A stretch of 64,000 nt of DNA. Source: Lytechinus pictus. Lineage: Eukaryota. Each line of letters starts with the position of its first letter. Within the stretch, counting starts at the first letter, position 1. A model generated the notes under the pieces. The model was not told the origin of the DNA. It was given only the letters and a program-made list of their open reading frames with translations, and did no database searches. The stretch spans positions 47,988,001 through 48,052,000 of the forward strand of contig NC_087246.1 in NCBI RefSeq assembly GCF_037042905.1, in the 5' to 3' direction. Below are positions 1,195 through 56,950 of the stretch, piece by piece. A program made the translations under genes and the position numbers.

Positions 1195-1923
1195 TTATAA
1201 TTTGCTTCCATCAGCTGAAAGTGCCTCTTCTTTATTCTCCCTTGCCATGAGGTCTATAAATCCCTGAGCTAAATTTTCATGATCAAAGCCTGGTTCCATT
1301 TCAAAGTCTGGAGCTCTTTGGTATACAGTACAAGCAGCAGAAATACATAGATACGCTGTCAAACCCCAAGTAATAAATCTCTTGCCATTGATAACGTGTT
1401 CAAAGTAGTGAAGCCAAGCAAATCGTCCTTTACTCAAGGTTCTTTGAGACTTGTGGTTATCACACAAGAGGAAATCGACAAGGGGTACACGGAAGACATC
1501 CTCTACTTCATTGGGGTTGATGTCAGGTTCAAACGTCTCAGGAACTAATCCTGCAACTGGTGTGATAAAGTAGCCATGCCGAGATGTCATTGGTGGAAGC
1601 TGGGACACCACCTCGACGTCCGAAGGATGAAGACCGATCTCCTCCCAGGACTCGCGTAGCGCCGTTGCAGTGTCATCTGCATCCTCGTCATCCCGCTTTC
1701 CACCCGGAAATGCGACATCACCAGCATCAGCCCGAAGGTGGGCTGCCCTCTTTGTAAGAAGTACCTCAAGATCTCCATTTTGACACAGTATCAAAGGCAC
1801 AAGAACAGATGCTTTCTTCCTCTGACTTGCAAACAACATAATATCTGATTCTTGCGTTCGTTCACTGAAGTCTCTTTCCAGGAGTCTAGTTCTGATGGTG
1901 GACTTGCTTAGTGGCGGTTCCAT
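1195..1923 (-). CDS. NUDT7: Peroxisomal coenzyme A diphosphatase (Nudix hydrolase), single coding exon, 242 aa
   Basis: CoA-pyrophosphatase motif LLTKRAAHLRADAGDVAFPGG followed by the Nudix box GKRDDEDADDTATALRESWEEIGL; TWGLTA motif; C-terminal PTS1 SKL. First in-frame ATG is at 1923; the track start at 1956 is non-ATG. Confidence 0.93.
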   Translation of the reverse strand: MEPPLSKSTIRTRLLERDFSERTQESDIMLFASQRKKASVLVPLILCQNGDLEVLLTKRAAHLRADAGDVAFPGGKRDDEDADDTATALRESWEEIGLHPSDVEVVSQLPPMTSRHGYFITPVAGLVPETFEPDINPNEVEDVFRVPLVDFLLCDNHKSQRTLSKGRFAWLHYFEHVINGKRFITWGLTAYLCISAACTVYQRAPDFEMEPGFDHENLAQGFIDLMARENKEEALSADGSKL

Positions 1924-2724
1924 GTTACTAGTAAATTGATATCCCAGACCCAGCACACTGTGAGTTTTGTTTTTGTTCTGTGGCTTTTCATCAGTTCATA
2001 CCAGTCTTGTATTTAAATTGAAGCCCAGCATGCGGCCTAGCTATCTCTACAGGCACATATCAGATACACGTTAAATCTTCAATCAGATTATGAATCCGCA
2101 ATACAAGCAATCCCATCTGCCTTGCTAGCTCATCAACATTAGCTGCTTACAGTGGCTAGTAGTAAACACTGCCTATTTTCTAAGTCTTAACTGTTAGTTC
2201 ACTTATAAATATAATCATGAAGTTCAGTTTGGATTGGAAGCTGCAGCATATAACGAGTGGTTCCCGCAACACGCGACATTAGGCAGTATCAGGCTCTGTC
2301 TATTGTAAATACTCAGTCTATGAAATTGAAAAGAGACAATAAATTATTGTTATGCTTCAGATCACGTCGCGTCGTTGTCGTTGTTTCAAAAATCCATTCA
2401 TTACGAAATCCTTGGAAAAAGCTTGATGTCAGGTGACACACCTCCTAGCTCCTCATATTAACTCAAGTGTAAACTAAATAGCAACATATCGAACAACAAC
2501 GCAGCTGCATACATCGGCTACATCTATAGTTCCACACGAGATCTACACCAAATGGCGCAATATATTTTGTAACCCGTCAGATGGCGCTAGACATTGTTGC
2601 ACTGGCCAAGTATCTTTGGCTACATTAACCAAAATCAATTTTCGTTAACTATATACATGTATTAGGTTCTAATTCAACCATTTACACAGAAGGACAAACT
2701 TTACGGAGCAATTAATCTACTGAA
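1924..2724. promoter_or_regulatory. Putative bidirectional promoter and 5' UTRs of NUDT7 and SHCBP1
   Basis: Divergent start codons 801 bp apart; locally more CpG; E2F-like TTCCCGC near 2261; two ATGGCG (YY1-like) motifs at 2552 and 2581. Confidence 0.55.
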
Positions 2725-5700
2725 ATGGATACTACGTATGTAATACAAACAAAAAAACAGAAGTTAGTGTCTGATACACTCACCGATTTCGCCAAAGAAG
2801 ACTCCCATGGGCTCAGCTGTCAACCGACTGATCAGCTTCCATGCAATGTCAACGACGAAGAGAGGCGGGAAGATTTGAACGGGGATGCGAAACAGAACTC
2901 GCCCGATACTCCTCCGACTAATAACGATCCTCGCTCGCCTGCTGCTGCGGAGCAAAACAGCAGCGGATTTGGAGACGAGATTGGACCGGATGAAGAACAC
3001 AAGAGTACCAATGATTTCGAGTCAGACGAAGAAAATGGAAATCCATTTCCTTCCATTTTTCAGACAGATAATCTCACTCATGCTGAACGTTTGCAAGCAT
3101 ATGCAAGTATTTTCCTGGCAAAATCGGAATCATGGGACGACAGAAGTTTTGATATTCATCAGGAAATGTATCTTTTCTTGACTGAAGCAGTCGTGAACTT
3201 TTGGACAGGGATCTGGAAAGTAGAAAATAATTGTGACGTTGTTATTGAGGTGAAGCACTTGTTTCATGATTTTTTGTTATTACAAATTTGATATGAAGAT
3301 GGTGATTATCATGATTCATGATTAGGCAAAAGCTACAGACACAGTCTCTGAGTGGAGTCTGACTCTGTAAATGTAAATTGGTTGTTCTGCTGAACTACAT
3401 TGGCTTTACTCATCAGTAAAATAAATCTCCATAAGCGATGGTTATTCCTGTCTAGATGACATTAGACTTTATACTGTGGTTATGTTTTAATGATGATGAT
3501 GATGATGATGCTGATGCCTGGTAAAGATGATGATGATGATGATCTTGATTGTAATGAATGATTGTGCTTCATTGCTTATCAATGATAATGGAGAATGTTC
3601 CGACGATGCAGACAAAGCTTAAGAGCTTTAAGGCCATAAGAGTGATTAATATGCTTGAATCAAAAGAACTGTGTGCTGCTAAGCAAACTTCTTTCTGCCA
3701 TGGAGGAGGTCATCATTCTTCATGAAATATGTAGTAGACTGTACAATTTTTATTAAGCTTTGACTGATGTAGATTCTCTAACAACAATTTCAGGACTGCT
3801 ATTTCACAAGTTCAAAACTTGGTTGGCCTTGCAGAAGAAAATCTTTCTTTCATCAAGCCTATTATATGAATGCATCTACTTTTTGAATGTTTAATTGACT
3901 ACTTTTTTTAAACTAGACCGACCATGCTCCACATCCAGAAAGCCGACAACAGCACCTGAAGGCCAAAGTGCACATCAGTGAACCCTTCCTGTGCATGCTT
4001 GATGGAGCTCTCTGCACTGAGGAAAACTCTGAGGAGAGAGATGAAGTGGAAAGGAAGATAAGAGGAATTCTAGAGAAATCAGAGGGACTTGTTGACCTCA
4101 CAGACCTCTATCCTGTCTACAACAAAACTGGCCTGCTAGACAACACTGCCTTGGCTATTGAACATGCTAGGTGTGTAAATTTATTGGACCATTTTCCAGA
4201 AATCATCATAATCGTGTTAGAACATGTCATAGAAATAATAAGAGATTACCGAATAGACCTAATTTTACAGATTGAGAAATTGGACTTCAGGAATGTCATT
4301 AGTCATCAGAACTTGTTTAAAAGTTGAAATAAAGCTATAGGAATTTGCTGTTGTCTGGCAATCAAATGACAGTCTGACAGACAATTCAATTGTTCCATTT
4401 TGAATATCTATAATCATAAGAATCCCCCCCCCCCATAAAAAAAAATGAATAAATGAATAAGGTAAATTCCACGCACAAAAAAGAAAAGAATAGATCAGTT
4501 TAAAAAAGCTGGATTTTGTTTTGATTTGTGTTCAATGCCAGGTTCTTCTACCAAAATCTTTGGAGACCTATGGATGATGAGGATGAACTAAGTGGATCAA
4601 AATACATGGATAAATATCTCAAACCAAGACTAAAATTGTGAGTAGGCCTATTGTGCTGAGATCTGTCAATGAAAGGGCCTCAAGCCCTGAATGTTCAGCA
4701 TCAGATGTATAATTCATCCATATCGTTGAATGGAATGACCTATATCTCCCTCTCCTATCCTTGCCTATAGTAGGGATCATGTAGGCCCTACCTGAATACT
4801 TATACCCCTTACTTACTCAAATGAACTGAGGGAGGAGGTCAATCTCCCGTTCTTCACTATTTCTGTGCAACCCAATCCTACTTTTTCACAAAATCAGATA
4901 TTTTCTATATACAGGGGTGTGAGAGTTCAGATTTTTATCTGATTTCAGATTTTTTTGTTTTGATTTTCAGCTTAATTTCAGCTTATTTTTGGCCTTCCTC
5001 TGTACAAAAAGTATGGGAGCTCTTTCTATTTCAGACTTTTTCAACACTCTTCAGCTTTTTTCAGATCTTTATTTGTGACCACTCACACCCCTGTTTATAT
5101 AATTTAAATAAATATTGTGAAGCTTCTGATACCAAGATTATGATCAGGACAAGAAGTCAGTTGGCAGTTTGTAGTTGTATGTTGTCTCATAAAGTATTTT
5201 TTCAGGAATTTGTGAAAACTTATAGAATTGAAATTATCTATAAATTACTACAAAGCACTGCTAATTCACATGATCCCATGCCATTTGAATAATATTTCTT
5301 TATTCAAGATTGATCAAATATAAATCTTAGAACCCAATCAGTCCTAAAACCAATACAATACATAAAAATAAAAACAATAAAGTACATAAGAAATTGACAA
5401 AGCGATGCATAATGAAACAAAATGTTTGTCAACATATTGTTGAAAATGTTTTCATCCAGGTTTTTGTGAAAGAGGGAATTAAGAACAAAAACATTCATAC
5501 ATGCATCTCATTTTCATAATCAAATAGAAAATATAAAAAATAATTTTGCCAGCTAAAATGAACTACACACCGACACCCTCTAGGCTTAACGTATGTCTCA
5601 ATGTCTTTGCAAGGTTTGCATCGATCAGAGGGGACCAGGATTCACATTGACCCTTCCCCCCTCCAAGTAAAAACTTAATTGTTTCTGGCTTCCATTCCTA

Positions 5701-11700: not shown

Positions 11701-11995
11701 CACTATACAACACAAAGTAAGATGCATAAACCTCTCTTATCTCCACTAACAGATCCAGGAGAGCGATGAAAAAGACGATAAGACGACTCTAACCCTGGTC
11801 GATACCAAGGTCTATGATAACCATGGTGCAGGAATGGCCCTCCTTGTAGGATCAAACAAAGAAGAGGAACCGGAACCCATCACCACCGATGTCATCGGGT
11901 TAATCTCTGGTGTCAATGTTCTTGACATGAAGAATAATGATTTCAAGGATAACTTACTTGGAGATGCAATGCTAGCACATTTTGTTGATGATTAG
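2725..11995 (+). CDS. SHCBP1: SHC SH2-domain-binding protein 1 homolog (SHCBP1/Nessun dorma family), 10 exons, 686 aa
   Basis: Exons 2725-3249, 3917-4170, 4542-4637, 5973-6227, 6633-6756, 7118-7271, 8396-8548, 9677-9783, 10947-11096, 11753-11995. All introns are GT-AG and the exons sum to 2061 nt in frame. Family signature ALAIEHARFFYQNLWRPMDDEDE...KPRLKFVYDV, coiled coil KMKMEKLENPVLR, and a C-terminal pectin-lyase-like beta-helix (GDTILIFPGSY...SVTIKGVGKRKDIII). Confidence 0.9.
3490..3545 (+). repeat. Interrupted (GAT)n microsatellite in SHCBP1 intron 1
   Basis: Two runs of GAT repeats seen directly. Confidence 0.85.
10246..10862. mobile_element. MITE with a probable nested second element, in SHCBP1 intron 8
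   Basis: Terminal inverted repeats GGGCCCGGTTGCATA ... TATGCAACGGGGCCC; internal inverted segments at about 10680-10840. Confidence 0.6.
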
Positions 11996-12882
11996 ATGTT
12001 CTTGATGTGAAGAAAATGATTTCAAGGATAACTTAATTGGAGATGCAATGCTGGCACGTTTTGTTGATGATTAGCTGTTCTTGATGTGAAGAATAATGAT
12101 ATCTAGGATAACTTACTTGGAGATGCAGTGATGGCACGCTTTGTTGATGATTAAAAGTTCTTGACGTGAAGACTAATGACATCAAGGATATCTTACTTGG
12201 AGATGCAATGATGGCATGCTTTGTTGATGATTAAAAGTTCTTGACGTGAAGAATAATGACATCAAGGACATCTTACTTGGAGATGAAATGCTGCCTGGCA
12301 CGCTTTGTTGATGATTAGATGTTCTTGATGTGAAGAATAATGATTTCAAGGATAACTTAATTGGAGATGCAATGCTGGCATGCTTTGCTGATGATTAAAA
12401 GTTTTTGACGTGAAGAATAATGACATCAAGGATATCTTACTTGGAGATGCAATGATGGCACGCTTTGTTGATGATTAGCTGTTCTTGATGTGAAGAATAA
12501 TGATATCTAGGATAACTTACTTGGAGATGCAATGATGGCACGCTTTGTTGATGATTAGATGTTCTTGATGTGAAGAATAATGATATCTAGGATAACTTAC
12601 TTGGAGATGCAATGATGGCATGCTTTGTTGATGATTAATAGTTCTTGACGTGAAGAATAATGACATCAAGGATATCTTACTTGGAGATGAAATGCTGCCT
12701 GGCGCACTTTGTTGATGATTAGATGTTCTTGACATGAAGAATAATGATTTAATGGATAACTTACTTGGAGATGCAATGCTGGCACGCTTTGTTGATGATT
12801 AGATGTTCTTGATGTGAAGAATAATGATATCTAGGATAACTTACTTGGAGATGCAATGCTGGCCTGCTTTGTTGATGATTAG
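11916..12882 (+). repeat. Tandem array of 12 x ~80 bp units; unit = last SHCBP1 codons plus stop
   Basis: Unit ATGTTCTTGAYRTGAAGAATAATGA...GGAGATGCAATGCTGGCACGCTTTGTTGATGATTAG/TAA; units start at 11916, 11996, 12075, 12155, 12235, 12319, 12399, 12479, 12559, 12639, 12723, 12803. Confidence 0.95.
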
Positions 12883-13364
12883 AAATTTATTTGTACCATG
12901 CATAGTAGAGTGTAGGAATGTTAACAGAGGGCTTCACTCCCTTGTCTGTTGAGAACCTTGATGGCCAGAATACACAAAGTTCGTTTTGAAACAGAGGTTG
13001 AAAACCATGGTTAATTACATATGCTCCTGTGACAGTTGCTCCAGGCCTTATCTTATCCAAGTTGTAGGGTTAGGGTTGCAATATGGGTTTACGTTGGGAT
13101 AAGGGTTACGATGAGGAGTAGGGTATAGTCATAAATCCAGGGTTGAAGTTAGTCATTCGATTAGTGAGTGGAATCTACAGCAGAGCAGTTGTCTCTAGAG
13201 CAAATGTCATGGAATTGGTTTATGCAAAAAAATTTCATGCATTGAATTATACGTGTATAATGACAAAGCGGCCGATCTTGAACGCACATGTTTATCACAG
13301 GGCGCTGATCTGGCCTATGATTTCATTCGCCTCTGCATTAATTACTGGATGCTTACTTCATGGG

Positions 13365-13612
13365 GGGGGGTGTCATGGTCTAGTGGTTATGACTCCTGTC
13401 TTTCAATCTGAGGAATGTTGGTTTGATTCCCAGCCATGCATGTTTTCCTTCATCAAGAAATTTACCCCCATTGTGCTGCACTCAACCCAGGTGAGGTAAA
13501 TGTGTACCGGCAGGAAGTAATTACTCAAAAACATGTGAGCACCATAACTGGTAGACTAGCTTAGCCAGGTGGATACATGCGCTTTTCAAATCCTGTATTA
13601 TTTATTTATTAT
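13365..13612 (+). mobile_element. tRNA-derived SINE, degenerate copy of the 45655-45929 family
   Basis: A-box-like TGGTCTAGTGG, B-box-like GGTTTGATTCC, shared core GTGCTGCACTCAACCCAGGTGAGGTAAATG and a TATT-rich tail. Confidence 0.8.
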
Positions 13613-13815
13613 TGCTTGATGCCAAACTAAACGCAGTCAAAGAATGAAATCTGCAAAAAGCATGTTGTGTATTTAAAACCAGCTTTGTGAATTCAGCCCA
13701 TTAGGCTTTTGTATTCTTCAACTCAGCTGCTTGCTTGTCAGTTAATTATTCTGATTCAAAATTTCTTTTGTCATCTCAAATTTTGAATTTGTGGCATAGC
13801 ATCAGTATGTTGTCA

Positions 13816-14638
13816 TTGTCTCGCCTGCATAGCAGAGCGAGACTATAGGCGCCGCTTTTCCGACGGCGGCGGCGTCAACATCAAATCTTAACCTAAGGTT
13901 AAGTTTTTGAAATGACATCATAACTTAGAAAGTATATGGACCTAGTTCATGAAACTTAAGCATAAGGTTAATCAAGTATTAGTGAACATCCTGCTTGAGT
14001 TTCAGGTCACATGACCAAGGTCAAAGGTCATTTAGGGTCAATGAACTTTGGTCAAGTTGGGGGTATTTGTTGAATTACTATCATAACTTTGACAATTTAT
14101 GGATCTTGTTCATGAAACTTGGACATTAGGTTAATCAAGTACCACTGAATATCCTGTGCGAGTTTCAGGTCACATGACCATGGTCAATGGTCATTTAAGG
14201 TCAATGAACTTTGGCCGTGTTGGGGGTATTTGTTAAATTACCATCCTAACTCTGAAAGTTTATGGATCTAGTTCATAAAACTTGGGATATAAGAGTAATC
14301 AAGTATCACTGAACATCCCCTGTGAGTTTCAGGTCACAAAACCAAGGTCAAAGGTCAGTTAAGGTCAATAAACTTAGGCCATGTTGGGGTAATTGTTGAA
14401 TTGCCATCATAACTTTGAAAGTTTATAGATAGAGTGAATGAAATGTGGACATGGGTGTAGTTGACAAGTCTTAAGTCACCGTTCAAATGTCATTTATGGT
14501 CAATGAACGTGGTATTATGTCATTATATGAATGGTGTTTTTGTGAATGATTATTTTATAGTAGTTTTCAAAGTTAGCACTGCTGCTATATTAAATCGCGT
14601 AATGCAGGCGAGACTGCCAGAGGCGTTCCACTTGCTTT
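13816..14638 (+). mobile_element. Non-autonomous Helentron/DINE-1-like (HINE) element, family A, with ~3 internal ~163-bp repeats
   Basis: 5' subTIR GTCTCGCCTGCAT (13818) with an adjacent inverted copy GCGAGAC; (GGC)n tract; internal repeats at 14001, 14164, 14328; 3' subTIR ATGCAGGCGAGAC (14602-14614). Confidence 0.7.
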
Positions 14639-14822
14639 AGGCCTAAAAGTGAGATTTTTTTTTCTTTTTGAGACTTTCAAATGGAATTGCCAGTACTACA
14701 AATACATGGTTGTGGTTGGTGTTGTTTCAGTTCCTTGAGCACATAATACATGTTGATTTCTTGCTATAAAAACATTTTTTTTTTTTTTTTTACTGATACA
14801 CAGAAGTAATAAATGATTATAC

Positions 14823-16601
14823 TTTTTGTCTCGCCCACCAGAGGTGAAGGCGAGACTTAGGGATCCAAATGTCGTCGTCCGTCCGTCACAAAGCTGTAAT
14901 GACACATAACTCCACAACCGTAAGTCGCTTTTCAACCAAACTTGGATGGTAGATGGACTTGGGGGACCTGCATGTTATGCTGCAGTCTGAGGTCACATGG
15001 TAAGGTCAAAGGTCATTTTCAGGTCAACGTTAAAGTTTACATGCAAGACTCTCTTATGACACCTAACTCCGCAACCGTATGTCGCTTTTCAACCAAACTT
15101 GGTTGGTAGATGGACTTGGGGGACCTGCATGTTATGCTGCAGTCGGAGGTCACATGGTAAGGTCAAAGGTCATTTTCAGGTCAACGTTAAAGTTTACATG
15201 CAAGACTCTCTTATGACACCTAACTCCGCAACCGTAAGTCGCTTTTCAACCAAACTTGGATGGTAGATGGACTTGGGGGACCTGCATGTTATGCTGCAGT
15301 CTGAGGTCACATGGTAAGGTCAAAGGTTATTTTCAGGTCAACGTTAAAGTTTACATGCAAGACTCTCTTATGACACCTAACTCCACAACCGTGAGTCGCT
15401 TTTCAATCAAACTTGGATGGTAGATGGACTTGGGGGACCTGCATGTTATGCTGCAGTCGGAGGTCACATGATAAGGTCAAAGGTCATTTTCAGGTCAACG
15501 TTAAAGTTTACATGCAAGACTCTCTTATGACACTTAACTCCGCAACCGTAAGTCGCTTTTCAACCAAACTTGGATGGTAGATGGACTTGGGGGACCTGCA
15601 TGTTATGCTGCAGTCTGAGGTCACATGGTAAGGTCAAAGGTTATTTCCAGGTCAACGTTAAAGTTTACATGCAAGACTCTCTTATGACACCTAACTCCGC
15701 AACCGTATGTCGCTTTTCAACCAAACTTGGTTGGTAGATGGACTTGGGGGACCTGCTTTTAATGCTGCAGTCGGAGGTCACATGATAAGGTCAAAGGTCA
15801 TTTTCAGGTCAACGTTAAAGTTTACATGCAAGACTCTCTTATGACACCTAACTCCGCAACCGTAAGTCACTTTTCAACAAAACTTGGATGGTAGATGGAC
15901 TTGGGGGACCTGCATGTTATGCTGCAGTCGGAGGTCACATGATTAGGTCAAAGGTCATTTTCAGGTCAACGTTAAAGTTTACATGCAAGACTCTCTTATG
16001 ACACTTAACTCCGCAACCGTAAGTCGCTATTCAACCAAACTTGGATGGTAGATGGACTTGGGGGACCTGCATGTTATGCTGCAGTCTGAGGTCACATGGT
16101 AAGGTCAAAGGTTATTTCCAGGTCAACGTTAAAGTTTACATGCAAGACTCTCTTATGACACCTAACTCCGCAATCGTATGTCGCTTTTCAACCAAACTTG
16201 GTTGGTAGATGGACTTGGGGGACCTGCATGTTATGCTGCAGTCGGAGGTCACATGATAAGGTCAAAGGTCATTTTCAGGTCAACGTTAAAGTTTACATGC
16301 AAGACTCTCTTATGACACCTAACTCCGCAACCGTAAGTCACTTTTCAACAAAACTTGGATGGTAGATGTACTTAGGGGACCTGCATGTTATGCTGCAGTC
16401 GGAGGTCACATGGTAAGGTCAAAGGTCATTTTCAGGTCAACATTAAAGTTTACGTCCAAGGCTCTGATGACAAGTGTTATTCCATCCCAGTCATTTCACA
16501 ATGAAGTTTCGATATAATTCTCTTGCGTGCCCTCACAAATCACAATATTTCTGGTTATTTTCATAAGTGGGCGAGACACAAAATTGCATTTGCCTTGTTT
16601 T
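14823..16601 (+). mobile_element. Non-autonomous Helentron/DINE-1-like element, family B, with 10 x 157-bp internal tandem repeats
   Basis: T-run then subTIR GTCTCGCCCAC (14828), local inverted GGCGAGAC, GTC/GTCC microsatellite, 157-bp period (14931, 15088 ... 16344), 3' subTIR GTGGGCGAGAC (16567-16577), ends in a T-run. Confidence 0.75.
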
Positions 16602-19600
16602 GAATTATGACTGTTCTTGGAAAAAAAATGTCTAAAATTTAAATTTGACTTCTAGCTCTCAGCCCTAAAGAAATCATTACTTTATATTGTCCTGTTTAAC
16701 TCAGCGTTTGTGTTTGTATGTTTCATAGCTGTGCAAGATTTATCATTCTGGAAAGGAACAAAAGAAAAGTACTGAAATATGCCAAAGATTCTGTTTTTTC
16801 TAATACATAGTTTTTGCTGTTGAACTAATGAAATATTTATTTTTATTCTGAGTCAATGTTGTTGTATAGAAAAATATATTGTTATTCTCCCTCCACTGTA
16901 AGTGATTGGCAGAAGCATTATGGGTTTTTTTTTTGCTGTCCATGTGCCATCCTGACTTTGTTCTTGTTGAATTAAGAACCATTTGACAGATCGAATTTAA
17001 ACTTTTTCCACTTCACATTTAAGAATGCCAATTATCTGTTTTTTAGGTATCAAGGTCAAAAGTCACAAAGGTCATGTGGATTGAAATAACTTGTACTTGC
17101 AATTGCTGAAAAACCATTTGAGAGAAAACTTCAAACTAGTTATATGAATGTAATAATCAAGGTACGGTATGTAATAAAAGTAATAAAATAAGGGACAATG
17201 ATCTGATTAGATTTGGGTGTCACACGGTCATTATTCAAAAAAATTTAGTTAGGTGTGTTATATATTCTGGATCTGCCATTGGTGGACTACGTGCAGTTGA
17301 GAATCCATATAATTTATTTCATAAAAAGCTTTTTGGCATTACCAATTAGTATATTTTGCTTGTAAAATGTAGATGTTTATATTTCTATGTGTAAAACACT
17401 AAGTCAGTAATAAGAATGTGTATTTTTGTATGTTACAGTCACAAATGTATTCAGCTGAAATCAATATAGTTTATACAAGTAATTTATGAATAAATTTAAT
17501 GTTGTAACATAATTGTGAATTCTGTTCACAACCTTATATGATGAACAGTGTTCAGTATATTCAATGATTCCATCACGGAACCAAAAAAAGCTTGTTTGTT
17601 GTGTCAATTGTTGGAAAAATTAGGAAAGTTTTCAACTCTTTTGATTGTTATTGATGTTGTATGTGGACCAAAAGAAAATGAGGTCATATGCAAATATAAT
17701 ACCAGGCTGTGGGAAAATATGGTGGGAATATATTAATCAGAGGTAGGTCTGGTGGTATCTTGATTTTCCAAGCCCCAAAGAAACGATAGTCAATTGCCTG
17801 TCAATCTGGGCATGAATAAATCCGTCCATACCTATCAAAGAAATGCCTAATATAATATTTAACTTAGCTTGCAACTTTGATAAAAACAATTGATCTCTTT
17901 GTTTTTGATAATTTCTGTTTGTATCAGTAGGAAATGTTTATATCTATATATATATTTATATATAAGACATCAGAAATGCGAAACAAATTCACGAGTAATG
18001 CAGTTTTTGAAGTGCCAACAATTAAGTTCTTTTATTGACTCTCCAAATTGCATTATGTCTGTATTATGTCTCCAAATTGCATTCACTCTCAACCAAGATG
18101 CTTATATATATATATATATATATAGGAATAGTAGGTATGGATCATGGATGCACATTTACTTCAATTCAGTTCCAATTGAATTCAAGTAAATCATTTTCTC
18201 AATCATGGAATCAATATAATATTTTGTTCTATCTTGGATGTATATTTTGAGAAAATTTATAGTATAAAGAATTTTTGTTTTGATGGAGAGAGACAACTCA
18301 ATTTGGAAAGTCATTTATATATCATGTGTCTGTCTTTGTAAATATTAAATTCTGAAGCAGAAGTCATTCTTTTATTTGCTTTGTTCAAGGTTTCATTGTA
18401 GTTAATGAATCTGCATTTTAAGGGGTACTCAAGACTAAAAATAATATCTGAATGAATAAAGTAAAATTCAACGAGCAAAGCGGTGAAAAGCCTACTGAGC
18501 TTGTTGTACGTACGCAAGCAAATAGGAGGCAGAATGTCAAACATTTGTAACATTGCACATGTACCGTCCAAAATGTACCATCCATAATGTACCATTGCAT
18601 GGTAAGAAACAAGGTGACATCACTATAATAATTAGAATTCAATGCATTGCACTTAGTTAATGGAGGTGCAATGTGCATCAGGCTTATTGGCTAAATGCGC
18701 ATTGCTGCTGCAGATCACATGCCAACAAGGGATTTTGCTAATTTGCTTTCAATAACTTTCTTTTTTTTATATATTATCATAGGGAAAAAATATATATATT
18801 TTTGCTAACTTTCAAGGCATTGTACAACACGAATAGAGAATATCTTATTTGTGCAATCGTGCAAGATTTCACATTCAGTGAACGAAAGAGACTATTCAAC
18901 GAGGCGCAGCCGGGTCGAATAGAGCATCTTTCATTCGCCTCGTGCAAAATCTTGCACCGTCACACACGTACCTATTCGCTATTTTTATATCAGCGTTTGG
19001 TAATATATTGTGAAAACAGTTCTATGCCTGCTACCATGAATACATACATGTAATAGGTAGGCTGAATATGTCATGTCCCCACTTTTCTTTTTCTTACTTT
19101 ATTAAATGAAATAGATTTCATATTTTCATACATGTGTGTAAAAACAGGTCTCCCTTGCAAAAAAATAAATTTCAACAATTATTATCTAGAGTTAATCACT
19201 AGTCAATCCTATTTTCACATTCTTAGAATATAGGTACTCCATATAACCATATTTTTGTGTAATCACATGCAAGATAATACAATGTAAGAGGGGATATGAC
19301 ATCATCAGCTTGTCCATTGTATTCATGAGGACATGCAAAGAACTTTCACAGACATAATACAAAACTTGAATTGGCATAACTTTATTCCTTGTCCGTTTCT
19401 GATTAAATTGTCATAAATCACATATTTTTCAGCCTAGAGTAACCCTTAAATGAGCTATGAACCTCCGAGGTCCAAGACACACTCACATGTTAGCAAAAAT
19501 AGGAGATTACAAAGCTGTCAATCAGTAAGATTTTACTCTGTTTATTTTAATATTTTTAAAAGGGGGAAATGTCACTGAATAGAATTTTCCCATTGAAAAA

Positions 19601-28706: not shown

Positions 28707-30464
28707 AGGGGAATCCAGCCTTGGCCATAAAATGTTGTGTTGGGTAGGAGAAAAATCAATTTAACAGAATGGTGAAAGTTTGAAAGAAATCGGACCAGCA
28801 AAGAAAGTTATAGCTGCTTTAAAATTGAGATCATTAATAGACTGCTGGCTAGCGACCGACGGGTTTCCATTCTCAGCCGTTCTCTGATTGGTCAGTTAAG
28901 ACAGTGCGGACGTGTCTGTGTGTTCCGTTCCGTGTGTGTGTGTGTGATGCGAAGCGTGCTGTACATGTGTTCATTGGACGTGTGGGCATAGAGTAGATAC
29001 CCAGTCGTTTTATTGATTTTAACCTTACAATAACAACGATCAGAGATGGGTTTATTTTGTTGCTGTGTGCATGTGAAGGATAGAAGTTTCTTACAGCTTA
29101 TTATTATAATTAACTGACTCTCTTTCCAAGCTTAAAATTATAACGATAATTTCTACATTCCAATTGTGTGATTTGTTTGTTTTAGAAAAGGTCTTTTATT
29201 TAAAATGGAAACATGCCAGTCAATGGACCATATGTTCTAGTGTTTAATGAAAATGGAAAACATGCTGGTCAATTGGCTATGTGTTTCAGTGTATAATGAA
29301 AATGGAAACATGCTGGTCAATTGACCAGTATAATATGAAAATTGAAACATGCCGGTCAGTTGACCATATGTTTCAGTGTATAATGAAAAAGGAAACATGC
29401 CGGTCAATTGACCGGTATAATATGAAAATTGAAACATGCCGGTCAATTGACCGGCATGTTTCCATTTTCATATTATACCGGTCAATTGTATGACCGGCAT
29501 GTTTCCATTTTCATATTATACCGGTCAATTGACCAGCATGTTTCCATTTTCATTATACACTGAAACACATAGCCAATTTCCATTTTCATTAACCACTAGA
29601 ACATATGGTCCATTGACTGGCATGTTTCCATTTTAAATAAAAGACCTTTTCTAAAACAAACAAATCACACAATTGGAATGTAGCAATTATCGTTATAATT
29701 TTAAGCTTGGAAAGAGAGTCAGTTAATTATAATAATAAGCTGTAAGAAACTTCTATCCTTCACATGCACACAGCAACAAAATAAACCCATCCCTGATCGT
29801 TGTTATTGTAAGGTTAATATCAATAAAACGACTGGGTATCTATTCTATGCCCACACGTCCAGTGAACACATGTACAGCACGCTTCGCATCACATACACAC
29901 ACGGAACACACAGACACTGCACTGTCTTAACTGACCAATCAGAGAACGGCTGAGAATGGAAATCCGTCGGTCGCTAGCCAGCAGTATTAATAGTATGTAG
30001 ATTTCAAATTGGCAACTGGGTAAGTAAATTATGACAAGAGGCAAGGACAACTTTCCCATAGGCCATGTACTCTTTTATCAGGGATTTGTGGTTTTCTCCT
30101 ACTTGTAAGTTACAGTACCCATTCCCCTGGGGCAGTAATCTAAATATAACCCAGGTAGTATATTGTTTTATGTCCTCATGAAAGAAAAATGTAATTTGAA
30201 ATAAAACTTCTGGGAAAAATGAAATTTTAGCCATAATATGTATTGGAGTACATGGAAGAGTAGTCCTTGCCTTACATCACTATGACATCCCATATGCGGC
30301 CAATTTGAAGTCTCCATGGGTATAGTGATTACCAATATTTACAACTTTTAAGGATTTATAACTTTCTTGTTGTTTGTCCAATATTGTTCAAACTTTCACC
30401 TATCAACTTGTCTGATTTTTCTTTTTCTTATAAAAACAAGTTTTTATTTGGGTTGGATTCCCCT
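28707..30464. mobile_element. Non-autonomous Kolobok-like element hosting a foldback insertion
   Basis: TTAA|AGGGGAATCCA ... TGGATTCCCCT|TTAA: TTAA target duplication and AG...CT termini. Confidence 0.75.
28841..29985. mobile_element. Foldback DNA element, almost fully palindromic, 8-bp TSD
   Basis: TIR ACTGCTGGCTAGCGACCGACGG; inverted arms longer than 400 bp; central ~40-bp subrepeats; ATTAATAG at 28833-28840 and 29986-29993. Confidence 0.9.
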
Positions 30465-31065: not shown

Positions 31066-32112
31066 TAAAAGTCAGATTGGTTAATCGACCTTATAGCCCG
31101 CTTTTGCAATTCAATAACATATCTTATAACGTCTTGTTTGTATTGCCCCAAGCCAATAAATACCATAAATTAGTCGTGATGGAATGAGAGTCATATATAA
31201 TTTTAATAGTATATAATCAGGAATAAAGAATTTCAGCTTGTTTAAAATACCTATACTTCTAGAAGTCAATTTACACTAGTAATTGATATGACAAAATATT
31301 GGAAGAATTTTTAAAATCATTAAAGAATGAAAAAGTAGGGAACCAAGGAGTGATCCTTGGGGTACTCCGCAAGATATTGATTTCAAACTAGAATTTATAC
31401 CTGCATAAAAAACAAATTGATTACGAGAATTGAGGTAGTTCCTGAACCAATCCAAGGCCTTACCACGAACACCATAATGTGATAATTTATATAACAATAT
31501 ATCATGGTAGATCGTGTCGAAGGCCTTGGAAAGGTCCAGGAATATACCAACAGTATGTAATGACTTATCGACGGCACATACCACCTTATCAATAAAAAAA
31601 AGTAAAGCATGAACATGAATCACGTAATATTTGACAGTCTTTTTAAAAATTTGATTAAGCGTGAGAACATTAACTTTTCTAGAAACTTTGAAAGCGAAGT
31701 GAGAAGTGAAATTGGACGATAGTTGCAAACTTCCCGTATATCATCTTTAAAAAAAAACGGGTATAACTTTAGCTACTTTCATAATTTATTACAAGGAACA
31801 ACGCCATTTGATAATGAGAGATTAAAAATATATGTCAATGGTGAGAGTATTTCATTAATTACCTTTTTCAAAAGGAAATTTGTTATTCCATCACTACCAG
31901 GACTCTTATCACATTTTAAATTATTTACAATATCTTTAACTTCGTATTCAAATATAGGGGTAAGGAAAATAGATTGCGGATAAGGATTCTTTAAAAAAAA
32001 AGATGTAAATTCTCTATCAGGTTCAGGGATATTCATTGAGAGGTTACCAATTTGAACAAAGTAATCGTTATACAACTCAGCTATTTCAGCAGGATCTTCG
32101 ACAATTTTCCCG

Positions 32113-34405: not shown

Positions 34406-35105
34406 TTAAAGGACAAGTCCATTTGAATTGAAAGAGAAAAATCCAACAAGCACAACACTGAAAATTTCATCAAAATCGGATGTTAAAATAATAAAGTTAT
34501 GACATCTTTAAATTTCGCTTAATTTCACAAAATAGTTGGCCAAAGTTCATTGACCTTACATGACCTTTGACCTTCATCATGTGACCTGAAACTCGCACAG
34601 AATGTTTAGTGATACCTGATCAACCTTATGTTCAAGTTTTAAATTTCGCTTAATTTCACAAAATAGTTGGCCAAAGTTCATTGACCTTACATGACCTTTG
34701 ACCTTCATCATGTGACCTGAAACTCGCATAGAATGTTTAGTGATACCTGATCAACCTTATGTTCAAGTTTCATGAACTAAGTTTATATATTTTCTAAGTT
34801 ATGATGACATTTCAAAAACTTAACCTTAGGTTAAGATTTTGATGTTGATTCCCCCAACTTGGTCTAGGTTCATTGACCCTAAATGACCTTTGGCCTTGGT
34901 CATGTGACCTGAAACTCAGGCAGGATGTTCAGTAATACTCGAGTAATCTTATGGCCAAGTTTCACGAACTAGGTCCATATACTTTCTGAGTTATGTTGTC
35001 ATTTCAAAAACGTAACCTTCGGTTAATATTTGGTGTTGGCGCCGCCGCCGTCGGAAAAGCGGCGCCTATAGTCTCACTCTGCTATGCAAGTGAGACAAAA
35101 AAAAA
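34406..35105 (-). mobile_element. Chimera: Kolobok-like left end fused to the 5' half of a family A HINE (reverse orientation)
   Basis: TTAAAGGACAAGTCCA at 34406; from about 34537 the reverse complement of 13816-14220, ending in CTATAGTCTCACTCTGCTATGCAAGTGAGACAAAAA. Confidence 0.75.
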
Positions 35106-56499: not shown

Positions 56500-56950
56500 T
56501 GCCCCCCGGTCAAACATCAAATCGGTGATCCAAAGGTCGAATATGAATTTGGCGCCCCCTCCCTAGGTTGAACATGAATCTGGCGCCCCAGGACAAACAT
56601 CAAAATGGCGCCCCTATGTCGAACATCATTTCGGCGCCCCTCTAGGTTGAACATCAATTCGGCGCCCCAATGTCGAACATCAATTCGGTGCTCCTAGGTC
56701 AAACATCAATTAGGCGCCCCTATATAATTATGTCGAACATCATTTCGGCGCCCCCCTCCCCTAGGTCGGACATCAGTTCGGCGCCCCCCCCCCCCCCATG
56801 TCGAACATCAATTCGGCGCCCCCTATGTCGAACATCAATTCGGCGCCCCTAAGTCAAACATCAATTCGGCGCCCCCCCCCCCTCTTCTCTTCTTCTTTCC
56901 CTCCCCTTTTCTTTCCCTCTGTTTCTTCCTCTTTTCGGCGCCCCTTTTTC
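56500..56950 (+). repeat. ~26-30 bp minisatellite GTCGAACATCAATTCGGCGCCCC
   Basis: More than 10 imperfect copies seen directly. Confidence 0.85.

Follow-up and report, generated by a model that had tools for sequence, protein, structure and literature searches.

Does a dense cluster of nuclear-receptor half-sites mark a regulatory element at the place where it is found, or does it come with the repeat that carries it? The question is raised by a 64-kb stretch of DNA from the sea urchin Lytechinus pictus (contig NC_087246.1, positions 47,988,001 to 48,052,000; hereafter the window, 64,000 nt without N), in which a first-pass annotation had described ten units of a 157-bp repeat inside a Helentron-like element and had proposed that this mobile element spreads clusters of receptor-binding sites. 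We find that positions 14823-16597 of the window hold a single copy of a non-autonomous Helentron (HINE) of very high abundance, hereafter element B, whose central tandem-repeat module is the 157-bp array. Taken as a whole, the locus is probably an ordinary HINE copy, whose box of AGGTCA motifs was inherited from its family and is conserved within its lineage. Motif clusters of this kind would accordingly be read as family baggage, and not as evidence for local regulation.

An abundant HINE copy and its central array

Tandem Repeats Finder resolved the array into 10.0 copies of a 157-bp period with 94% matches and 0% indels (Table 1), which matches the ten units described before. With the units cut in register, AGGTCA starts at unit positions 92, 105, 112 and 123, i.e., at 14990, 15003, 15010 and 15021 in unit 1. 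The spacers of 7, 1 and 5 nt correspond to the arrangement of direct repeats (DR) that had been claimed, namely DR7, DR1 and DR5. The box returns every 157 bp, for the last time at 16403-16439, and all of its sites lie on the + strand. We counted 37 exact AGGTCA and three AGGTTA, the latter at the third site of units 3, 5 and 8; both the estimate of about 40 half-sites in 1.6 kb and the three deviating third sites of the earlier description thus held. The middle pair of each unit forms a DR1 with an A spacer, all four sites of the box correspond exactly to the consensus, and RGKTCA half-sites arranged as direct repeats are present in each 157-bp unit. Across both strands of the whole window, exact AGGTCA occurred 81 times compared to 28 ± 4.9 in shuffles, and the count in the rest of the window fell to chance level after subtracting the HINE-borne sites, i.e., those of element B and of three similar repeat blocks.

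The sequence on either side of the array has the anatomy of a HINE, which confirms the Helentron-like context proposed at first pass. Specifically, element B displays inverted subterminal repeats, a complementary internal repeat (class range 1-22 nt), a GTCY-type microsatellite and a central tandem array. The two 8-nt arms of the left flank (GTCTCGCC and GGCGAGAC) are 100% complementary and stand 13 nt apart, giving a hairpin (14828-14856) that folded as DNA at -11.4 kcal/mol (z = -4.8) and was matched by 0 of 200 shuffles. Runs of T are found at both ends of the element (14823-14827 and 16598-16601). Its presumed 3' end reads ...GCCTTG (16597), followed by TTTT, and was placed there by likeness to a neighboring HINE, element A, in which family similarity stops 20 nt past the 3' subterminal repeat. 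In element A, this repeat lies at 14607-14614 and the 3' end at 14634: depth in public reads is 0 after 14648, and loose read ends past 14634 are A/T-rich and unrelated. Folded as a single strand, the 157-bp unit showed nothing unusual (z = 0.5), and an Rfam scan of 13500-17500 returned no RNA family.

Copy number and boundaries were evaluated from public data, with the raw reads of two RNA runs and two sets of contigs mapped to 14460-15060. In a single DNA run, 23,976 contigs match at ≥85% identity. Depth climbs from 0 to hundreds of thousands at 14817-14837, and the loose ends before 14823 are A/T-rich and mutually unrelated; because of this jump and of the unrelated outer ends, we set the 5' end of element B at ~14823. 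At the other side of the array, the right flank begins with the sequence that all four runs give as the consensus of loose ends past unit ends. In RNA and DNA runs alike, the joint seen most often goes back by 157, which is the unit junction, and joints of 126, 146 and 154 indicate unit-length variants elsewhere in the genome. The GTCG/GTCC microsatellite also differs among copies, by indels of 1-4 nt. As a side observation, the 80-bp right flank of element A (14555-14634) outnumbers the 157-bp unit in the reads. This flank belongs to a much larger family, because most of its copies are preceded by a different and highly uniform sequence (loose-end agreement of 0.96).

RNA depth reached ~1,900 per direction on the 157-bp unit and ~400 on the left flank, and was 0 on the unique spacer at 14649-14711; no RNA from the unique flank of the element B locus was detected in the two RNA runs. 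Since the two strands are covered equally and depth broadly follows DNA abundance, this signal is indistinguishable from pervasive read-through or DNA carry-over. Separately, one contig of run X15, labelled organism B, showed 0 differences over 153 nt to 14610-14762, i.e., to the unique spacer between two HINEs. The sample behind this run may come from the same or a very close species or from a hybrid, or it may be mislabelled.

The array has been remodeled recently. Pairwise unit differences sort the ten units into three types, which follow one another as a b a c a b c a b c, with one difference between units 5 and 8, two between units 2 and 9, and four between units 6 and 9. Given the near-identity of these pairs, the last six units represent a very recently duplicated three-unit block of 471 bp. 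Array length changes by unequal exchange or slippage, after or between insertions, as in other HINEs. We also considered classical satellite DNA, i.e., long arrays forming heterochromatic blocks, and rejected this assignment for a 1.6-kb array that lies within transposon flanks and in gene-bearing DNA.

Table 1 Features of element B and of related repeats in the window.
Feature	Position	Strand	Basis or remark
Element B, whole non-autonomous Helentron (HINE) copy: left flank, 10-unit array, right flank	14823-16597	+	Depth jump, loose ends, anatomy
5' subterminal inverted repeat GTCTCGCC	14828-14835	+	Complement GGCGAGAC at 14849-14856
GTCG/GTCC microsatellite closing the left flank	14871-14887	+	Direct reading of the sequence
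Central tandem array, 10 × 157 bp	14899-16465	+	Tandem Repeats Finder, read joints
AGGTCA box of unit 1, four half-sites, spacers 7/1/5	14990-15026	+	Unit positions 92-128
Right flank, 130 bp, with 3' subterminal repeat GGCGAGAC at 16570-16577	16466-16597	+	Sequence and loose read ends
Element A, sister-family HINE: hairpin left flank, 3.3 units of 163 bp, box spacers 8/1/4	13815-14634	+	Repeats, fold, depth
Fragment of a fourth repeat family (D), AACCATTTGA boxes 135 bp apart	16977-17125	+	Sequence
Element C, third HINE, same superfamily as A, 131- and 192-bp units that contain the same box	34440-35105	-	Right end apparently truncated

The AGGTCA box across families and genomes

Next, we compared the repeats of element B with those of the other HINEs in the window. 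The A/C consensus and that of the 157-bp (B) family can be aligned solely in a block of ~40 bp containing the AGGTCA motifs. There, 24 of 24 half-site bases are alike compared to 9 of 14 bases in the intra-box spacers (Fisher p = 0.004), while identity to the left of the box (49%) is that of a shuffled null (46 ± 3%). The span from first to fourth half-site is 31 bp in both lineages, even though it is partitioned as 8/1/4 in A/C and 7/1/5 in B. Among the five A/C units, mismatch to the consensus was 4.2% for half-sites and 12.4% outside the box (p = 0.005). At the level of sequence, these comparisons establish that the ~40-bp box of four AGGTCA is a family inheritance, transmitted nearly unchanged across HINE families that are otherwise unalignable, rather than a local invention.

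The same comparisons indicate that the DR7/DR1/DR5 grammar is not what is conserved: the sister family has spacers of 8/1/4, the third family another layout, and relatives in another genome (see below) carry 22-bp subrepeats. Judging from these layouts, the only recurrent features are the multiplicity of AAGGTCA and the DR1 pair. Old individual units lose sites, with TGGTCA (twice in one unit), AGGCCA, GGGTCA and AAGTCA all observed, and one terminal unit has all four half-sites decayed. A degenerate cluster (AAGGTCA, AAAGTCA, AAGGTCA) also lies at 17052-17074 in the family D fragment. In unit 2 of element A (14180-14193), both adjacent heptamers read ATGGTCA instead of AAGGTCA, and this shared A to T change suggests conversion or slippage between the DR1 heptamers.

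The first-pass annotation had called for a comparison of half-sites with spacers as a test of their importance, and its outcome depends on the level at which it is made. Between family consensuses, half-sites are better preserved than spacers, as given above. Within the array, 26 of 157 columns vary, and just one of these (column 116, where units 3, 5 and 8 have T in place of C) is among the 24 half-site columns, a deficit that does not reach significance among units that are non-independent (Fisher one-sided p = 0.06). In the family from another genome, the difference is small. Any such test is moreover confounded by CpG: the best-supported family variants in the reads fall at CpG (unit positions 22, 29, 90 and 131), and C>T and G>A far outnumber the other changes, while the AGGTCA box contains no CpG. 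CpG sites therefore need to be removed from any half-site versus spacer test. Among the best-supported variants listed, none falls within 14989-15028 (121 others are outside this list), and the unit has two further stretches that are just as free of them.

To look beyond this genome, we searched a metagenome collection. A 24-mer from the family-B unit outside the box gave 0 matches, and a core pattern with 24 specified bases (the first half-site, CATG, 2-4 free bases, and the DR1) was found in at least 120 contigs, with ~0.02 expected by chance. The matched contigs are eukaryotic host DNA. When the window was compared to the 120 metagenome loci by blastn, no alignment was obtained at E < 1e-5; since the two share no other similarity, the metagenome host is not a close relative.

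The elements on these contigs are nevertheless built as HINEs. They open with a different subterminal repeat and its complement, followed by a CGCTTTCCG stretch and a TCTG/TCCG microsatellite, a combination that closely resembles the left flank of element A. They continue with a short body and two or three 22-bp subrepeats rich in AAGGTCA, and end on a right flank in which the subterminal repeat is inverted and a palindrome is clearly present, at an insertion site rich in A/T. Metagenome contigs with tandem units of ~150 bp were also found, with 5-9 GGTCA each, of which only the box aligns to the families of the window (z = 6-7). Across 104 metagenome copies, mismatch was 16% for the two GGTCA hexamers outside the search pattern, 14% for the subterminal repeat and 10% for the 3' palindrome, compared to 19.8% at the other non-CpG positions (p = 0.003 relative to GGTCA).

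Beside these elements, one contig (JAAUXW010185303.1 of assembly GCA_013332895.1, locus L027, positions 1753-3630) contains an open frame of 625 aa. Its matches among 5.8 billion proteins are itself, one relative at 62% and one weak match, all of them unnamed. The 625-aa frame has no Pfam family, and Pfam assigned none to three long open reading frames (ORFs) of the metagenome contigs.

Overall, three points are new here: evidence for the box as the sole constrained portion of HINE repeats that are otherwise unrelated, evidence for its recurrence in another genome, and the need for a CpG control in comparisons of this kind.

Probable selection on the box and competing explanations

Because conservation of the box sits in family consensuses, it would reflect selection that acts between transposon lineages rather than selection by the host on single insertions, and we consider it likely that the box is under constraint at this lineage level. 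From what is described for the class, copies are expected to spread in trans through a Helentron Rep-helicase-endonuclease that recognizes the hairpin and subterminal-repeat ends, and to land in T-rich DNA without target duplication. The box would then be retained as a protein-docking platform that aids the persistence or propagation of the element. By analogy, we infer that it may be the local version of the "reduced-variability segment" in the core repeats of related elements.

Several observations weigh against this interpretation. The stability of the box is partly mutational, as it lacks CpG. Units within arrays are not independent of each other, and the cross-family comparison comprises few independent lineages, i.e., A/C, B, the degenerate D and the metagenome families. 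Host-level selection may also act on some copies. The GGTCAAAGGTCA / DR1 motif was not found in the part of the oyster Cg_HINE arrays available to us, and the box thus appears to mark one lineage of HINEs rather than being universal in the class. As for the class assignment, the 3' stem-loop expected of HINEs is unconvincing in element B: the palindrome after the subterminal repeat has a stem of 4 bp at most and, at z = 0.7 in both elements A and B, is shuffle-like (not significant). The 64-kb window contains no Rep-helicase ORF, and no genome search for an autonomous Helentron partner was made. Finally, the T runs of element B and the A/T-rich flanks of other copies would fit insertion into T-rich DNA.

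Given these reservations, we weighed what else could account for the box. Part of the first-pass proposal clearly stands: the carrier is a HINE, and perfect half-sites, DR1 included, occur at very many places in the genome (the 23,976 contigs). The further proposal was a working nuclear-receptor response array, with RXR, HNF4, COUP-TF, PPAR or RAR occupying the DR1 and DR5 and the element acting as an enhancer, silencer or sink; this we judge unlikely. The maternal factors of sea urchins include COUP-TF and related orphan receptors able to bind repeats of this sort, each box offers four exact consensus sites with a textbook DR1 and its A spacer, and half-sites are kept better than spacers between families. 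Precedents exist in the DR2 and HNF4 DR1 sites of Alu (PMC1785376, PMC3252374) and in B1 and NR5A2 (PMC10709309). However, spacing differs between families (7/1/5, 8/1/4 and others), so that DR5 and DR7 are not conserved, old copies lose their sites, conservation is seen in family consensuses rather than per locus, and the unique flank of this locus was without RNA in two runs. In addition, the copy number is so high that most copies cannot be specific regulators, although a sink effect is conceivable. Regulation of SHCBP1 or NUDT7 by the element B copy, in particular, is highly improbable.

The likeness to receptor sites might instead be coincidental, with the box serving as an iteron-like site for Helentron proteins or as a signal on a single-stranded transposition intermediate. 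Short direct repeats near the origin commonly serve as Rep-binding sites in rolling-circle replicons. Consistent with such a role, the box accompanies HINE ends in two unrelated genomes despite different subterminal repeats, and the metagenome family has it immediately upstream of the right flank, with a degree of preservation close to that of the subterminal repeat. Yet element B carries the box tenfold in its middle, far from the ends, in an array that is free to differ in length from copy to copy; as a single strand the unit does not fold in any unusual way, and the oyster HINE arrays, to the extent that they were accessible, lack the box. We know of no Helentron protein-DNA contacts for central repeats, and overall we regard a replicative or transpositional signal as an unlikely explanation as well. 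A further possibility is that the box has no function, i.e., that it is a decayed (AAGGTCA)n heptamer microsatellite, made by slippage, which hitch-hikes in young amplified families and seems conserved because it contains no CpG. Indeed, HINEs carry microsatellites, the DR1 amounts to two tandem AAGGTCA heptamers, and metagenome relatives have their 22-bp subrepeats. The parallel A to T change in unit A2 suggests conversion between neighbors, variation is dominated by C>T and G>A at CpG, which are absent from the box, and the deficit of variable half-site columns in the B array is non-significant. This explanation is nonetheless difficult to reconcile with the A/C versus B comparison, where the rest of the unit is at random identity while all 24 half-site bases and the 31-bp span persist. 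It would also leave the recurrence in another genome unexpected, unless the box were repeatedly re-created or exchanged between families, and we therefore consider a functionless box quite improbable.

If the box is instead maintained among transposon lineages as proposed, the nature of its binder is the next question. An AGGTCA DR1 is a textbook high-affinity site, bound by COUP-TF, HNF4, RXR or related receptors, and from this established biochemistry the box is predicted to be a likely receptor ligand in vitro. The second site of the element A family also fits the extended monomer site YCAAGGYCA. In vivo, a host DR1-type orphan nuclear receptor of the COUP-TF, HNF4, RXR or TR2/4 class is a possible, if tentative, candidate; an element-encoded or other protein is somewhat more doubtful, and the lack of any binder is less probable still. 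At the speculative end, the GGTCA box could be a handle with which a lineage of Helentron-derived elements, in sea urchins and in one or more other animal genomes, recruits a maternal orphan receptor (COUP-TF, TR2/4, HNF4 or FTZ-F1 class) and on which the success of the element depends. Although we see little chance that this holds, it would mean that hundreds of thousands of perfect DR1 sites shape receptor availability and early-embryo chromatin, similar to B1 and NR5A2 in mouse, and it would give the "conserved box" of the pearl/DTC84 type its first molecular identity. More generally, should the box bind a receptor in vivo, it would represent a transposon-made reservoir of high-affinity DR1 sites in a developmental model with easy embryo reporters. 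Receptor binding would also be a direct test of the old idea that dispersed repeats carry sites for regulatory proteins.

Genomic surroundings and known systems

The neighborhood of element B includes genes and further repeats. NUDT7 had been placed 13 kb from the array and, at this distance, we found an uninterrupted ORF of 253 aa on the minus strand (1195-1956) with a NUDIX domain (E = 5e-13). For the SHCBP1 assignment, the ten + strand ORFs at 7.1-12.0 kb showed no Pfam family above threshold. Directly upstream of the HINE pair, a tandem array of 12 × 80 bp (11916-12883) displays higher-order periods of 324 and 404. An ORF of 150 aa on the minus strand at 31276-31728 contains a reverse-transcriptase domain (E = 1e-12) and is probably a retroelement fragment. 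Tandem and palindromic units of 39-87 bp around CCGGTCAATTGACCGG at 29247-29553 include an inverted GGTCA pair; they are by sequence unrelated to HINEs and possibly belong to a foldback-type element. Lastly, a unit of 26-27 bp (CCCCTATGTCGAACATCAATTCGGCG) forms several arrays at 56503-56936, which overlap one another and have C-rich linkers.

Known HINEs combine a left flank made of a subterminal repeat, an internal repeat and a GTCY microsatellite with central satellite-like repeats and an inverted repeat in the right flank, and are known to carry microsatellites (PMC7492417, PMC4067079). Within sea urchins, Tsp elements have been counted as DINE-1-like, and Helentron proteins are on record in Lytechinus variegatus and Strongylocentrotus purpuratus (PMC4067079 and its supplement). 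Oyster Cg_HINE and DINE-1/HINE elements resemble element B in their flank plan, high copy number and apparent insertion into T-rich DNA. They likewise have a short central array of 140-180-bp units and families that share short conserved boxes, and a GTCY-type microsatellite is common to the left flanks of Cg_HINE and of element B (PMC7492417, PMC4067079). On the other hand, Cg_HINE sequences are unrelated to element B, which has a weak 3' stem-loop. AAGGTCA is absent from the HINE supplements of PMC4067079, and our literature search returned no paper that joins the AGGTCA-box motif with bivalve repeats.

Receptor binding to the box would also bear on the unexplained "reduced-variability" segments of satellite-like transposon repeats. 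Such a segment lies near the end of the core repeat. In DTC84 it is a palindrome, in CvA it resembles a microsatellite motif, and in BIV160-type satellites and Drosophila PERI it takes the form of two boxes; for these segments, binding of an unknown protein was suspected and never assayed (PMC3879986). The pearl elements CvA and CvG, DTC84, MgE and Tsp of Strongylocentrotus purpuratus all share the modular plan of element B (PMC3879986). In element B, the conserved segment consists of four AGGTCA hexamers, unlike either the DTC84 palindrome or the motif of CvA.

A different parallel is provided by mammalian repeats. Alu contains functional DR2 and HNF4 DR1 sites (PMC1785376, PMC3252374), and in mouse embryos at the 2- to 8-cell stage NR5A2 binds motifs that lie within B1 repeats (PMC10709309). 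Alu and B1 are short interspersed element (SINE) retroposons with 1-2 sites per copy and demonstrated receptor binding, whereas element B belongs to the rolling-circle DNA elements and offers four putative sites in each unit, or as many as 40 in one copy. Common to both is a high-copy mobile element that scatters consensus or near-consensus receptor half-sites as part of its family sequence.

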